Positions 42,888 through 49,343 of a DNA stretch of 64,000 bases are shown here, one piece after another (within the stretch, counting starts at the first letter, position 1; every line of letters begins with the position of its first letter). The translations under genes were made by a program, and so were the position numbers. The stretch is from assembly GCA_021613535.1 (NCBI GenBank), contig CP075497.1:8556001-8620000 (forward strand), in the 5' to 3' direction. The DNA comes from Adineta vaga. Taxonomy: Eukaryota; Animalia; Rotifera. The notes beneath the pieces are model-generated. The model was not told the DNA's origin and searched no databases. It saw nothing but the letters and a program-made list of their open reading frames with translations.

Positions 42888-44445
42888 TTAGATTTTAAGT
42901 GGTTCGATTTCACCAGATGTACTAGGAGCTTCTTTTGCTTCAGATATTTCTTCGCTTAATTCACGAGTTGTTTTACTCAAGGTATCAACAGATCCATGAT
43001 GAACTGCTTTTTTTGATTTCGAACATTTTCGATAGATAAATTTACAAAGAAGAATAACATGAAATGGCTGAGCTGATAGATACGCAACAATGAGAGGAAT
43101 AACAGAAGCTTGACTATTTTCGGGTGCTGGAAATGAATAAAGTAATACCATAAATGCAACACCAACATTTTGAATACCTTAAAACGAAAGGTTTTTCTTT
43201 TTATCAAATTCAAAATTTGCAATAATATTACCTGTCTCTATTCCAATCGTTTTAATTCGTGACCAATCTTGTCCACAAATCCAAGCAAATACACCACCTA
43301 ATAGAAAGCCTGCCAAGGTAAAAGAGGTGCTGACAATGCTGTTCGTAAATCAAGATATCGAAAGAGATAATAATTAACGAAAGCACCAAAAACAAAGAAA
43401 TAAATCATCAAGATTAATAACATTGGTTTGAAAATACGTGTTACAATTGGTTTTAATTTTGGAATACAATAAACAAGAAGCATACCAAGTGCAAGAGGAC
43501 CGATAACTGTCAATAATGTTTGTGCTAAATTTAGAAATGGTATATGAATTTTTAATTCATTTAAATAAGCACGTTCTCCAAGTGTATATAACCAAAATGG
43601 CAGCATAAAAAATGATGCAACAGTCGATGCAAATGACATAAATGCTGATAGATTTAGATCACCATCGAATAATACTGTCCATTGATTGGATGCCCATCCA
43701 CCGGGACAACATCCAACAACGAATAAACCTAGACCATAGAGTGGTTCATAATGAAAAATCTTTGTTATACCAAAAGCTATAAGTGGCATAAGACCATATT
43801 GACAAACAAAACCTATACAAACTTGTATTGGTCGACGAATTAATTCTTTCAATACTTCTATGTCTAATAAAACTCCCATTTGTATTGAAATAAACATAAT
43901 AATAAATGGAATGAGACCTTTGAATATTTTATCAATTAAACGACGTGGTTGGTTGACTATTACAACAATCGAACACTTAATACGATAAATACGATTTTTT
44001 GTATTGATCATTTGAATTGAATAATTAATCGTTGTTCGATTAATATAATTAGCATGTATTTGTAAATTATAAATAAGTATTGATTCATTTTTAGATACTA
44101 CTAATAGAATTTATAAATATAAAAGAAAAACAGGTTAATTATTAATATTTATTTACTTTTTGTATTATTTGATATATGTAAAACATCATCAATTCGATGG
44201 TGATCATTGTAGAATGAAGCTACTTTTCGATCATTGATCCACGACGATATATGAACTGTATGAATATTCAATCGTTGAAGATGAGTTCGATTCAATTGTA
44301 TATGTATAATGCGTGTTGAAAATAATGGTATTACGTAAGTATCATTAACACATCGAGATGTTTTATTAGAAGTAATCGACTGATTTCGACATTCAAGTAG
44401 AGAAATAGATGTTATAAATATGAATAAAACGATGGATGGGATCAT
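42888..44445 (-). CDS. SLC10 (bile acid:Na+ symporter family, P3/SLC10A3-like) transporter; apparent 1-nt frameshift near 43313
   Basis: Signal peptide and long ectodomain; IGFVCQYGLMPL, GCCPGGWASN..DGDLNLSAFMS, TIGIETG|IQN. The frame breaks at PW-(x)-GFLLGG. Confidence 0.88.
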
Positions 44446-45205
44446 TTTATTGTTTATCTATGTTTTTTCATGATTATCTAAATGATTGACTATTTATCAG
44501 CAGACTTTGGTACGTTCTCCATGAATGCTTTTGATCTATTGATCGTTGTTATCCCCGCTTCTTTTGTATAATATATCAAATACTCACCTTGATTTAACTG
44601 ACGGATCATAATCAGATAGATATATAAAAAATTGACAGTACATACAACAAACTATGATGTATTTTTTTCTAAATCAGATGATGCGGATAAAATACGATAC
44701 TCTATTGTTCATTATGGTTTTTAAAACGAACGTACCTAAAGAAAAATCGCCCATTTTTCTTTTTCAAAATAACCTTGAAAAATACAAATAGACACCATTA
44801 GATTTTACGCGAAATAATAAATCTAATGTATCTCTACTGTTTTTCATTCGAAGTAATAAAAGGTAAATAACATTGTTTGTTCAGAATTATAAAATTTCAA
44901 CTTGTACATTTATTATAATGAAACAATGAGCTTCACTTGTAAATGAAATCATACTATGAATTGAAAGAAATGAATAACTAAATAACTAATCAAAATCTAT
45001 TGAATCAACGTCAAATCTGATTACACATCAAGTGAGTTTAATGAGATAGTCAACATGAAATAATCTTTTTCTCAATGGATGTGAATTATGAATACTTAAT
45101 TACAATATCTAGAATGTACAACAGTTATTTTAACATCGAAATATATCAAGATTTCAAGTAATTTGACAAATTCCACGACTCTAAATCGAATCGTAGATAG
45201 ATTGT

Positions 45206-45550
45206 TTATCTTGATGTTGATGAATATTGTACTAATACTTGACAATGATCATATTCTCGTCTTGTACAAAGATCTTTACACTCTAGAACAATTGTTCTTG
45301 CTTTTCCAACACGTTTTCGAAGATTTTCCATACTTGTTCTACTTCCAGCATAAGAACGGCGAATGTCATAACGCATATCTCGAATAATTTGTAATAAATA
45401 TAAATATTTTTCTGCGAGAATAGCTGATTGTGGTTTGATGATGAATGGTGATTGAGGAGAAAGGGACGATGATGTTGATGAATTGAGATGATTTTTTGAT
45501 ATTAATGAATAACGTAATCGTTTTGTTGTTGTTGAATTCATTACTTTCAT
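45206..45550 (-). CDS. CDK2AP1: CDK2-associated protein (CDK2AP1/2, DOC-1)-like
   Basis: EKYLYLLQIIRDMRYDIRRSYAGSRTSMENLRKRVGKARTIVLEC matches the CDK2AP pattern KY..LL.II......IR..YAGS....E.L......AR..V.EC. Confidence 0.8.
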   Translation of the reverse strand: MKVMNSTTTKRLRYSLISKNHLNSSTSSSLSPQSPFIIKPQSAILAEKYLYLLQIIRDMRYDIRRSYAGSRTSMENLRKRVGKARTIVLECKDLCTRREYDHCQVLVQYSSTSR

Positions 45551-45572
45551 ATGATATTTAAATAGCGCGAAT

Positions 45573-45935
45573 TTAAAGTAATGAACATTGTTGTTTATCA
45601 CGAAATGGATTATCTCTTGGTGATGGAAAACCAACGACAAGTACATCACTTGATTGATGATCGGTAACATAACGAACAAGATCTTTACAAACAATTGAAA
45701 CTTTCGTACGTTCACGTCCTGCTTCTTCGCGTAAATGTTCACATAAACGACGTTGAGTTGCATAAACCGTTTGAACTTGATCTAAAATTTAGAGAGAAAG
45801 AAAATCTAATCAAATTTTATTTTCAATTCACTTACATTCAGGTGCATAAGATCGAGATGAAGAAAAATTGTCAGTAACACGATGAGAAGTAGCAACTTGA
45901 TTATTGGCAGCAGTATTCGTTTGTTGGGTAGACAT
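45573..45935 (-). CDS. GNG: Heterotrimeric G-protein gamma subunit (102 aa), 2 exons; absent from the ORF track
   Basis: Exons 45836-45935 and 45573-45781 (intron 45782-45835). Translation ..QRRLCEHLREEAGRERTKVSIVCKDLVRYVTDHQSSDVLVVGFPSPRDNPFRDKQQCSLL has a GGL domain, NPF motif and CAAX box CSLL. Confidence 0.93.
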
Positions 45936-46665
45936 AGGAAATGATTTTAATTAAAGAATATCTCGTTGAAATGTATTTTTTATCTTAAAAATCTTTTGCA
46001 TAAATTTACACTAATAAAAGAATTTGATTTTTCTTGTTACTTGATGTAAGTATTCATAATCGAATAGATGAATACTTTTATCGTCTATTAAATCTCGACG
46101 ATGAAGACGTGTTGATTGAAGTTCTAGTAATACAAACTAACAATTCTTCGCACAAATATTAGCAAAAAGTTTGAATAGAATCTAAATAGTCAGAAAAGGA
46201 AATAGAAAAAGAAAATATTTAGAGCCTTCTTTTCTTTTTTCTTTCTCGTGTCATCTTCAAATAGGACTATTTCTTTTGATAGATGTTCAAGCGAACTTTT
46301 CCTAGTGCATCCTTTTTCTTTTCTCGCTCTTTGCGCATATTCCCAACAACTAATAAGAAAATGACGTTTCTTTTCAAGGAAGTACGTCCAACGCACACCA
46401 CAGTTTCTTGTTTTTTTTTTTTTGATGCGTTTCAACATAATTATATCTAATAGGCAGGCTGTAGTATAGCAGGAAAAGAAAAGCGAGAAGATAGCATGCA
46501 AAAGAATCACTTGAAACTACTTTCTAGAATGAATTATGAAAAGAAAACTAATTATTTCATATGAAATTTAATCTTGCCTGATGTAATATGTACTTTTATA
46601 TTTTTAATTCAAGATTATAAAAAGAATTCGTATTTATTATTAATTACAAGAGAAAAAAAAGATAT

Positions 46666-48330
46666 TCAATTTTGTGGAATAAAACTCATGGATAAATGTT
46701 CAATATCTTCTTTTATTAATACACTCATGCCCATAAATAGATGTGAACCAATATGACAATGTAATAACCATAAACCAGGATTGTCAGCAATAAAACGAAG
46801 TTTAATCCAACCACATGGTTTTAAATAATTCGATACTGATCGATTTGGTGTTAAATGATCATAAGAAGTTGCGTAGAGTGTTAAAGAATCACGAAAAACA
46901 GGATTATCTATATCTGGAGTTGAGTCAATAGCTGAATTATACATTCCACTACCCATTGAATGTATCCAAAATTTATGTCCATGTAAATGAAATGGATGTG
47001 TTTCACAAACACCATTTGTAGCGACAGTATTTTGAAGAACAATATCAATTAATTGATTTTGCTTGATTGAATATGTTGCATCGTGTGGAAAATTATGTTC
47101 AATACCATTGAAAGCATCATAGATCAATGGTTGTGTTAACGTGATCAAACGTAGTTTATCTAATGTTGCATTATTGGTGAACCATCGCATACCTAAACCA
47201 TCTGCTGTACGAGATTGATAATTATAGAGAAATATTTCACGATCAGCTGCTCGTTTTGGCATATGATCGATACTTAATAATGACTCGAAAGGATTTTCAA
47301 ATGAAAATGAACGTAATTCTTCTTGAGTCGATAAAGATGGTAATGGAATAGATGACAAATCAACTAAATCATTTGCATGCGTACTATAACGTAAGATTCC
47401 TGTACAGCTAAAGAATAGAAAAGAAAGCATTTCACATCAATTCAAATTTGAAATCTAAGATTCGAATTATTCAAATAAGATTTACCTAGAACCACTAACT
47501 AATGTTCTCCATCGAATTGCTAATTGCATAAGAAATATTCCTCTTGTTGGATGATTTGTTTCAATAATAACTGCATATCTTTGTCCAGATGAGAGTTCAA
47601 TTGATTTGATATTTTCTTTGGGTTTAATCAATGTTCCATCGACTTCGACGATTGTCATTGGATGTTCATCGATACCAAAAACAACTGTTGATAATGTTGT
47701 AGAACCAATTAATCGTAAAAGATATTTTCGACCAGGATCAAGCGTTAAAGTGAAATTTGTTTTACCATTGATTAATAAGTATGTTGGTTCACCCTGCCAA
47801 ACAAATGGTGATGCAAGTAAATTGTATTCTTGAGTTAAACGATCAGGTTTTTCCCATGTATCCGAGAAAAGTAAGGGACCTGAAGAAACTTCAGAAACAT
47901 TCCATGGTTTTCTTCTATCGTGTACTATAATACCACCAAATGCAGTAACGGATTGTAAACCAGCATGTGAATGATAAAAATATGTTCCCGACGGATAAGC
48001 ACGAAAAACATACGTAAAAGAATATTGACTTTCAATTGGCATTTGAGTTATATAAGGAACTCCATCCATCTGTGGAGTTTGTCGAACAAGCATTCCATGA
48101 AAATGTATTGCTAGACGTTCACTTGCTGGTAAATTATTCTGTACATGAATAATAATAATATCATTAAGTTCAGCTTCGATTAATGGACCAGGAATTTGAT
48201 TATTAATAAGAACAATAGAAGCAGAATTTACAGCATAAGATACATTGAAGTGATAAACAATACGATGATTAACAATAGCAACAGATTTTGTTAAAGATAA
48301 TATGGATAGAAAAATATAAATACAAATCAT
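46666..48330 (-). CDS. Secreted multicopper oxidase, L-ascorbate oxidase/laccase-like, 2 exons
   Basis: Signal peptide; IHFHG, GTYFYHSH, HPFHLHGH, NPGLWLLHCHIGSHLFMGM; intron 47408-47485. Confidence 0.93.
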
Positions 48331-49343
48331 CGTATTCAAAATAAATAAAACAAAAGATATAAATTATATAAAAGTTCACCAAGATGATTTATAAAATGGT
48401 ATTGATCGATAGTTGTTTCTTTTCAATAGAAGATAGGGCCGACTTAATCGACTAAAACGATATGTTGTTCGTGCCTATTCAAGGATGACTTCTTTCTTCT
48501 GTCGTATAGAAATGAAATAGTAAACATAATTTATTCGTTCTTTGATATCATGTAAACAGAACAGGTTAACTTTCTACATTCTGTATATTTTTCATCATAT
48601 CGATCTATTAAACTAAATGACTTGACAGTACAATAATTTAGTCACACATTACTTTCATACAATTATATTTTAGGTGTATATATTCATTCACTTCGTTAAT
48701 GCGTTCATATTCAAATGAAGAAGAGAAGAAAATGATGATTGTATTTCGATGTGTTTCAGGTCGTTGATTAATGTTCTGATAGGAGTAGAGAATTGTTTTT
48801 TTTTCAGGTGCAATTTTAATTCGTATTCATGAGAAAGTCTTTGAATTATATCAAAAGTTTCGTACTGAAATCAGATTCCTAGATTGTTTTTTATTGTCAT
48901 ATAATTCCTGAAAGATAGTTATATCAATATACTTCATATAGTTAAATATAAACTTTGTATGGTTATTAATGATATATGTTGCTTTATTTGAATTTTTTAT
49001 TGCAAATATTTTAATAAAAGCCGAACTAAATGCAACATCCCACGCAGTTACTGACGTTTTCTTCATTCGTCAATTTATACGTGACAGAAAGAATAATAAT
49101 AAAAAAAAAGAAGAAGAAGAAGAAAGAAAAACCTTCTCAGACTCAACACTATGCTGGGATACCGATGCGACATGAAAGAGAAGAAAAACTTTTTTCTCTC
49201 ATTCTCATTTTTTAACGGCACAGTATTTTTTTTACTCTCTGTCAACAATTCATTTATTCGCGATTTTTCTCTGCCCTTATAAATATAACTGACTGTGATT
49301 AATTCCATACGTTTTTCTACTCTCTATATTCATACAAGCAACT

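Follow-up and report, generated by a model that had tools for sequence, protein, structure and literature searches.

Can a G-protein gamma subunit (G-gamma) and an unrelated CDK2AP-like protein be encoded by one messenger RNA (mRNA) in Adineta vaga, which is a bdelloid rotifer, and by which route would the second open reading frame (ORF) then be translated? The question is raised by a locus on the minus strand of a 64,000-nucleotide (nt) stretch of contig CP075497.1 (assembly GCA_021613535.1, positions 8,556,001 to 8,620,000), which is called the window here and whose numbering is used throughout. A preliminary description, made from the sequence letters, had proposed that a single mRNA serves both proteins, either by leaky scanning into an overlapping frame or by termination and reinitiation. 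The reading favoured here, with a probability of roughly 60%, is that of a conserved bdelloid tandem unit: a structurally dicistronic G-gamma mRNA on which the CDK2AP-like protein would start at its own conserved AUG and not in the overlapping frame. What the data establish is co-linear spliced RNA at the level of contigs, an inter-ORF region free of processing signals, a conserved layout, and purifying selection on both ORFs. The G-gamma mRNA would continue past its stop, through a spacer of 22 or 31 nt and the complete CDK2AP-like ORF, to a shared polyadenylation, or poly(A), site; the second protein would begin at AUG 45541, with AUG 45550 also usable in A. vaga. The A. vaga assembly comprises 100.8 Mb in 6 contigs, with a G+C (GC) content of ~30%. 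The unit has the following parts:

45936..46086, minus strand: G-gamma 5′ untranslated region (UTR), with a 48-nt intron (45993-46040) that is optional, and with ATG 46057, which opens a short upstream ORF

45836..45935, minus strand: G-gamma exon 1, with ATG 45935-45933; 33 codons plus one base, containing the +1-frame ATG 45847

45782..45835, minus strand: G-gamma intron of 54 nt, GT..AG, absent from the RNA contigs of runs X1, X2 and X12 (three studies)

45573..45781, minus strand: G-gamma exon 2, with the GGL domain, the CAAX box CSLL and TAA 45575-45573; its end reads ...NPFRDKQQCSLL and then TAA

45763, 45670 and 45646, minus strand: +1-frame ATGs within G-gamma exon 2, from an inventory of ATGs; the frame is stop-free

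45547..45588, minus strand: 13-codon ORF in the +2 frame, with ATG 45588 in the CAAX Gln-Cys codons; its TGA (45549-45547) overlaps ATG 45550 as ATGA

45542..45572, minus strand: inter-ORF spacer, reaching ATG 45550 after 22 nt and the conserved ATG 45541 after 31 nt, with a GC-rich core TTCGCGC (45571-45565), then TATTTAAATA

45206..45550, minus strand: CDK2AP-like ORF, 114 residues from ATG 45550 and 111 residues from the conserved ATG 45541, with its stop at 45208-45206

44880..45205, minus strand: shared 3′UTR, holding the only poly(A) signals after the G-gamma stop, ATTAAA 45042-45037 and AATAAA 44914-44909

The first part of the question concerns the RNA. RNA-type contigs from runs of three studies were placed on 44000-47200, and in each run one spliced contig covers both ORFs, with the flanking intergenic DNA uncovered on both sides:

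44880-46086: X1 contig, with the 5′UTR intron 45993-46040 removed (joint 45992/46041) and 45782-45835 removed

45032-46070: X2 contig, with the 5′UTR intron retained and 45782-45835 removed

45010-45981: X12 contig, with 45782-45835 removed

These contigs are assemblies rather than single molecules; shorter transcripts could be merged into them, and rare or short forms dropped. They end 5-32 nt past the two poly(A) signals that follow the CDK2AP stop; neither AATAAA nor ATTAAA occurs from the G-gamma stop to the CDK2AP stop (45575 to 45206). Since the contigs span both ORFs and end past the downstream signals, the G-gamma mRNA appears, at contig level, to run through the whole CDK2AP-like ORF. 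The preliminary description had asked whether this mRNA extends through 45206, and the contigs of all three studies pass that point. Its broader proposal, one mRNA for both proteins, is supported as far as a single spliced contig carrying both ORFs goes, whereas the translation route of the second ORF forms no part of that support.

Several side observations concern the same RNA data. ATG 46057 opens its short upstream ORF in both 5′UTR splice forms, with the intron removed or retained. Run X8, labelled as another organism (B), gave a low-depth contig of 244 nt (45456-45699) across the junction with 3 differences from A. vaga, which could be a close relative or cross-contamination. The ortholog contigs fetched for other species are all genomic DNA rather than RNA, as the intron is still present in them.

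If both ORFs are transcribed together, might the RNA be cut apart afterwards? Bdelloids are known to have spliced-leader trans-splicing (PMC7986045). As in the spliced-leader operons of nematodes and tunicates, the two genes here are tightly spaced on the same strand, are transcribed together and belong to an organism with a spliced leader. A leader added upstream of the CDK2AP-like ORF would then yield a separate capped mRNA. However, the 22 nt between the G-gamma stop and ATG 45550 (45572-45551) hold no AG, AATAAA or ATTAAA, as had been read from the sequence earlier. In A. vaga the AG at 45545-45544, between the two CDK2AP ATGs, is not conserved, and apart from this one and that of L033sp the spacers lack an AG. 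An acceptor would have to lie within the G-gamma coding sequence. Neither a poly(A) signal nor a 3′ end of the upstream message is found at the junction, through which the contigs run, and no foreign leader letters or loose ends were seen on the X1, X2 and X12 contigs at the locus, a type of assembly that drops rare or short variants. The locus thus differs from the nematode and tunicate operons in having no conserved acceptor, no upstream 3′-end signal and no leader on its contigs. Trans-splicing is disfavoured because most spacers lack an AG and the upstream message has no end or signal there, and a spliced-leader operon is regarded as very improbable. A scan for bacterial promoters and terminators was set aside as irrelevant to this locus.

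Both proteins score above the curated Pfam cut-offs of their families. On the minus strand, the two-exon G-protein gamma gene has a 102-residue product identical to NCBI I4U23_029976 [Adineta vaga]. Pfam and PDB searches of the spliced model were run exon by exon: exon 2 matches PF00631 at E = 1.7e-16 (60.4 bits, cut-off 27.1), spanning positions 2-68 of the 69 in the profile, and it hits G-gamma-2 in PDB at about 4e-7. The CAAX box CSLL at the C-terminus is invariant among linked orthologs. The CDK2AP-like ORF matches PF09806 in its C-terminal part only, at positions 150-205 of 209 (E = 3.6e-9; 37.6 bits, cut-off 26.2), and in PDB it matches, by sequence only, the C-terminal helical dimer domain of CDK2AP2 (2m1l, 1.4e-6) and CDK2AP1 (2kw6, 4.2e-6). 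Two other CDK2AP genes are located in the A. vaga genome on C2 and C5. Because these copies are only 37-39% identical to the ORF described here and closer to the human proteins, the ORF is classified, by its sequence, as a divergent third member of the family, with the canonical pair on C2 and C5. The protein has 39 relatives at 61-88% identity, and all the named ones are from bdelloids (Adineta, Rotaria).

An intronless ORF in the 3′UTR of another gene, with canonical paralogs elsewhere on C2 and C5, could be an untranslated and decaying retrocopy, the case that the preliminary description had named as refuting its proposal. The comparison across bdelloids speaks otherwise. The CDK2AP-like ORF is intact in every lineage examined, and it has the 39 relatives mentioned above. 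Its ratio of nonsynonymous to synonymous substitution rates (dN/dS) is 0.12-0.26 across bdelloids, with synonymous sites near saturation. The start is conserved as well: across species it is the second ATG of A. vaga (45541, beginning MNS and more generally MN(S/T)), 31 nt after the G-gamma stop, with a purine at -3 in every lineage and the usual form ACAAATGAA. A decaying retrocopy is excluded because of the low dN/dS, and its chance is practically nil. Purifying selection is seen on both ORFs.

How far is the arrangement itself conserved? Orthologous DNA was obtained for four named species, A. steineri, A. ricciae, Rotaria magnacalcarata and R. sordida, and for eight further lineages present in metagenomes or in contaminated assemblies; a metagenome scan contributed 4 of the loci. 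At least 10 bdelloid lineages besides A. vaga retain the G-gamma/CDK2AP pair, its neighbours and a short spacer (22-60 nt). The neighbours in the window are:

46666-48339, minus strand: multicopper oxidase, upstream neighbour

43298-44445, minus strand: SBF-type sodium/bile-acid transporter, downstream neighbour

Wherever the flanks are present (A. steineri, A. ricciae, R. magnacalcarata, R. sordida and the metagenome lineages), the order is multicopper oxidase, G-gamma, CDK2AP-like gene and SBF transporter. Between the G-gamma stop and the conserved MN(S/T) ATG, the spacer has these lengths:

31 nt: A. vaga, A. steineri, both Rotaria species, L038sp, L041sp and L042sp

22 nt: L040sp

37 nt (31 nt to an extra ATG): A. 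ricciae

40 nt: L037sp

60 nt: L033sp

38 nt: L051sp

A conserved spacing of 22 nt had been anticipated; what is kept is a short spacer, but the most frequent length is 31 nt to the conserved ATG. Two word-based searches, in which a monogonont outgroup was sought, gave no named ortholog outside the bdelloids, and no large HMMER search was made.

Side observations on these loci deserve mention. Those of L033/L043 (GCA_016307145.1) and L039 (GCA_024510685.1) come from very fragmented assemblies whose accession series suggest large non-rotifer projects, and they are probably rotifer contamination of non-rotifer assemblies. The public A. ricciae model (L032:2501-3235, P0024) joins 70 residues from the N-terminus of G-gamma to 75 from the C-terminus of the CDK2AP-like protein through a predicted intron with good-looking sites (CG/GTATGT at the donor and TTTTCTTGTCAG/G at the acceptor), and the donor is absent in A. 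vaga. This fusion may be an artefact of annotation; if not, it would be an alternative splice particular to the species. The record is an example of an annotation hazard, in which the two genes are merged into one protein model.

Unlinked copies of G-gamma provide a point of comparison. In A. steineri, an intact and unlinked G-gamma ohnolog has AATAAA immediately after its stop and no CDK2AP gene, which, judged by sequence, shows the form of the G-gamma gene when it is unpaired. The ohnologous region of that species is without both the CDK2AP-like and the SBF gene. The A. vaga ohnolog on C3 (region C3:7813651-7813812; L005:1490-2060, minus strand), annotated as I4U23_013206 with 91 residues, has a frameshift, with a 1-nt insertion following the QR codons, and another residue stands in place of its CAAX cysteine (end ...KQKYLPL). 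It looks like a pseudogene, and no CDK2AP gene is found behind it.

Could the second protein instead be read from within the G-gamma exons? The frame of the CDK2AP-like ORF, which is +1 relative to G-gamma, is indeed open across exon 2, as had been described; it is open from 45781 to 45206 and also across exon 1, with a 185-residue ORF from ATG 45763. The exon 1 ATG at 45847, 12 nt (4 codons) before the donor, likewise stays in the CDK2AP frame after splicing, since exon 2 starts in phase 0. In a dual-coding exon, ribosomes skipping the weak G-gamma AUG, which has a pyrimidine at -3, would start at the +1 AUGs (45847, 45763, 45670, 45646) and make N-terminally extended CDK2AP isoforms. A version of this explanation for the main bdelloid clade is that selection kept ~77 overlapping codons stop-free through the Adineta and Rotaria radiation. 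When the synonymous codons of exon 2 were resampled, with codon usage drawn from the window's long open frames, the +1 frame was expected to hold 2.7 stops on average against the 0 seen in A. vaga, with P(no stop) = 0.029. Such an open alternative frame is therefore unusual, as had been claimed, but not extreme for one species. The +2 frame of the same exon has 7 stops. Across species, the +1 stops in exon 2 are distributed as follows:

11 sequences with CDK2AP in the +1 frame: 0 in nine and 1 in each of A. ricciae and L038sp, with 2.3-4.3 expected

L033sp, with CDK2AP in frame 0: 2

L051sp, with CDK2AP in frame +2: 3, and a TGA that stands in frame two codons ahead of the CDK2AP ATG

Unlinked G-gamma copies: 1-3

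This link of few +1 stops with the +1 position of the CDK2AP-like ORF is the best argument, at the level of sequence, that selection may act on the open frame in the main clade. Linked copies use CTT/CTC and GTT/GTC/GTG where TTA, CTA, GTA or ATA would make a stop, the spacer lengths within the clade differ by multiples of three (22, 31, 37, 40), and the proportion of synonymous differences in exon 2 is lowered against A. steineri and Rotaria. However, the unlinked ohnolog has the same CTT codons and shares much of the nucleotide conservation in the middle of exon 2. The weak AUG context, considered as a special trait of the linked copies, was discarded on the same ground, being present in the unlinked ohnolog too. 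The open-frame lineages may also represent one clade, in which case their counts are not independent.

The orthologs were expected to keep the +1 frame open, and 8 of the 10 other +1 sequences do, but A. ricciae and L038sp carry a stop inside exon 2, and in L038sp no usable +1 ATG follows it. None of the alternative-frame ATGs is conserved: ATG 45847 is absent from R. sordida, and ATG 45763 from A. steineri, R. magnacalcarata and A. ricciae. Because of these unconserved ATGs and the situation in L038sp, the N-terminal extension is not required for the CDK2AP-like protein, and it has no Pfam match. Together with the other CDK2AP frames of L033sp and L051sp, the stops and the unconserved ATGs leave overlapping-frame translation unsupported as a general mechanism. 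A dual-coding exon is thus considered unlikely, and selection for an open frame limited to the main clade is equally doubtful; an N-terminally extended isoform may exist in A. vaga, with a similarly low probability. If the exon were dual-coding, overlapping frames of a single mRNA would encode both a subunit for signalling at the membrane and a factor of chromatin or the cell cycle.

A related explanation is recoding at the G-gamma stop, in which a +1 frameshift, or read-through where the frame is shared, would yield a G-gamma-CDK2AP fusion protein. In 12 of 13 sequences the CDK2AP frame passes through the spacer without meeting a stop, the TGTTCATTACT before the G-gamma stop is invariant at the nucleotide level, even in the GC-rich L037sp, and in L033sp the two ORFs share one frame with an open spacer of 20 codons. 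Nevertheless, L051sp has CDK2AP in frame +2 with its TGA two codons before the ATG, and an open spacer is not special, as several spacers are stop-free in all three frames. There is no conserved slippery site (CTT TAA, CTC TAG and CTT TGA all occur), no conserved downstream structure and no Rfam frameshift element. Recoding is accordingly given scarcely any weight.

The favoured reading of a tandem unit with its own conserved AUG leaves several putative routes to the second protein, which are not mutually exclusive. One is a shorter transcript starting at or near the spacer element. A GC-rich core within an AT-rich spacer is present in all lineages, as TTCGCGC in most and as TTTCGCGCC in L033sp, CGCGCG in A. 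ricciae, ACGCGTTGCGCC in L037sp and CCCGCCAAAA in L051sp. The core agrees with the E2F consensus TTTSGCGS at 8 of 8 positions in two divergent lineages and at 7 of 8 in most others; the background of such matches in the window is 0.02/kb (8/8) and 0.88/kb (7/8). The motif was chosen after the sequences had been viewed, and the positive control failed: the 300 nt upstream of the A. vaga genes for PCNA and DHFR contain nothing of the kind, and thymidine kinase was not found. The E2F-like motif is thus a lead for a putative internal start site and not a finding. The idea of a widespread promoter element was rejected, as the 15-mer of the spacer occurs once in the genome and TTCGCGC is at chance level in the window. 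An internal start of this kind is possible, at odds well short of even.

Another route is reinitiation on the dicistronic mRNA, either after the G-gamma stop or after the small ORF whose TGA overlaps the CDK2AP start. This ATGA overlap is found in 10 of the 11 sequences that have CDK2AP in the +1 frame; in the 9 others besides A. vaga a comparable small ORF, 13-19 codons long, terminates on the ATGA at which the conserved CDK2AP start lies. Termination-reinitiation dependent on a termination upstream ribosome-binding site (TURBS) is known from caliciviruses and influenza B, and the bdelloid junction resembles it in the ATGA stop-start overlap at the downstream AUG, here with the small upstream ORF, and in the conserved sequence upstream of the junction. 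It differs in that the G-gamma stop lies 22-60 nt from the AUG, in that the match to 18S is 11 nt long and not conserved, and in the lack of a conserved stem. This longest run of 18S pairing (45609-45599 against 18S 1417-1427) was rejected as a TURBS-like element: 15 of 200 shuffles reach 11 nt, and the run is broken in L037sp and L038sp. Reinitiation is held to be about as possible as the internal start, and equally tentative.

Leaky scanning into the +1-frame AUGs, giving extended isoforms in the main clade, would be a less probable route than these two. Plain leaky scanning to the conserved AUG was rejected as unlikely, because there is no shortage of ATG triplets between the G-gamma and CDK2AP starts (6 seen, 5.3 expected). 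A very improbable route is trans-splicing of a spliced leader to a site within the G-gamma coding region, and other routes, such as an internal ribosome entry site or recoding, would share what little is left.

A number of points weigh against the favoured reading. Contigs cannot prove single molecules, and an internal start or a rare trans-spliced form could have been merged or dropped. Reinitiation is generally inefficient after an ORF of 102 codons, and an out-of-frame ATG lies inside the spacer of A. ricciae and L037sp. An own promoter would rely on a motif selected post hoc for which the PCNA/DHFR control failed, and any 5′UTR would be shorter than about 40 nt. At the junction itself, RNAalifold gave no conserved RNA structure over 11 lineages (-19.5 kcal/mol, with an unfavourable covariation term), no significant 18S complementarity was found, and a search for Rfam elements returned none.

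How does the locus compare with known systems? Mammalian dicistronic cases include SNURF-SNRPN and GDF1/CERS1. Dicistronic genes of Drosophila have been curated by FlyBase (PMC4528330). The bdelloid pair is like these in having two unrelated conserved ORFs separated by a short gap with no processing between them, and is different in its gene pair, G-gamma and CDK2AP-like, in its phylum, Rotifera, and in being known at the contig level, with translation of the second ORF putative. The model of leaky scanning in green algae reportedly depends on a low number of AUGs in the upstream ORF. The polycistronic nuclear transcripts that these algae translate by leaky scanning (PMC7896298, PMC11291117) share with the bdelloid locus a short spacer, a weak start context of the first ORF and conservation of both ORFs. 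In contrast to the algal model, ATGs at the bdelloid locus are not depleted, leaving leaky scanning in the +1 frame as the only form open to it. Operons and polycistronic mRNAs were unreported in rotifers as of 2021 (PMC7986045), and none of the papers searched describes a polycistronic mRNA from the phylum. The preliminary description knew of no G-gamma/CDK2AP pairing, and a literature search found no paper linking the two.

To our knowledge, animal mRNAs with two unrelated conserved protein genes are rare outside Drosophila. In animals with a spliced leader, the normal account of a tight gene pair is an operon whose products are cut apart. At this locus the signals usual for such cutting are missing, and the pair stays together across bdelloid genera. 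The locus therefore offers a clean natural test of the way in which rotifers express a second ORF, whether from its own start site, by reinitiation or by leaky scanning, and its interest would rise if the dual-coding or the reinitiation route were shown. For the biology of bdelloids, a CDK2AP paralog specific to the group and tied to the gene of a G-protein subunit hints, as far as its sequence can tell, that signalling and cell-cycle or chromatin control may be co-regulated.

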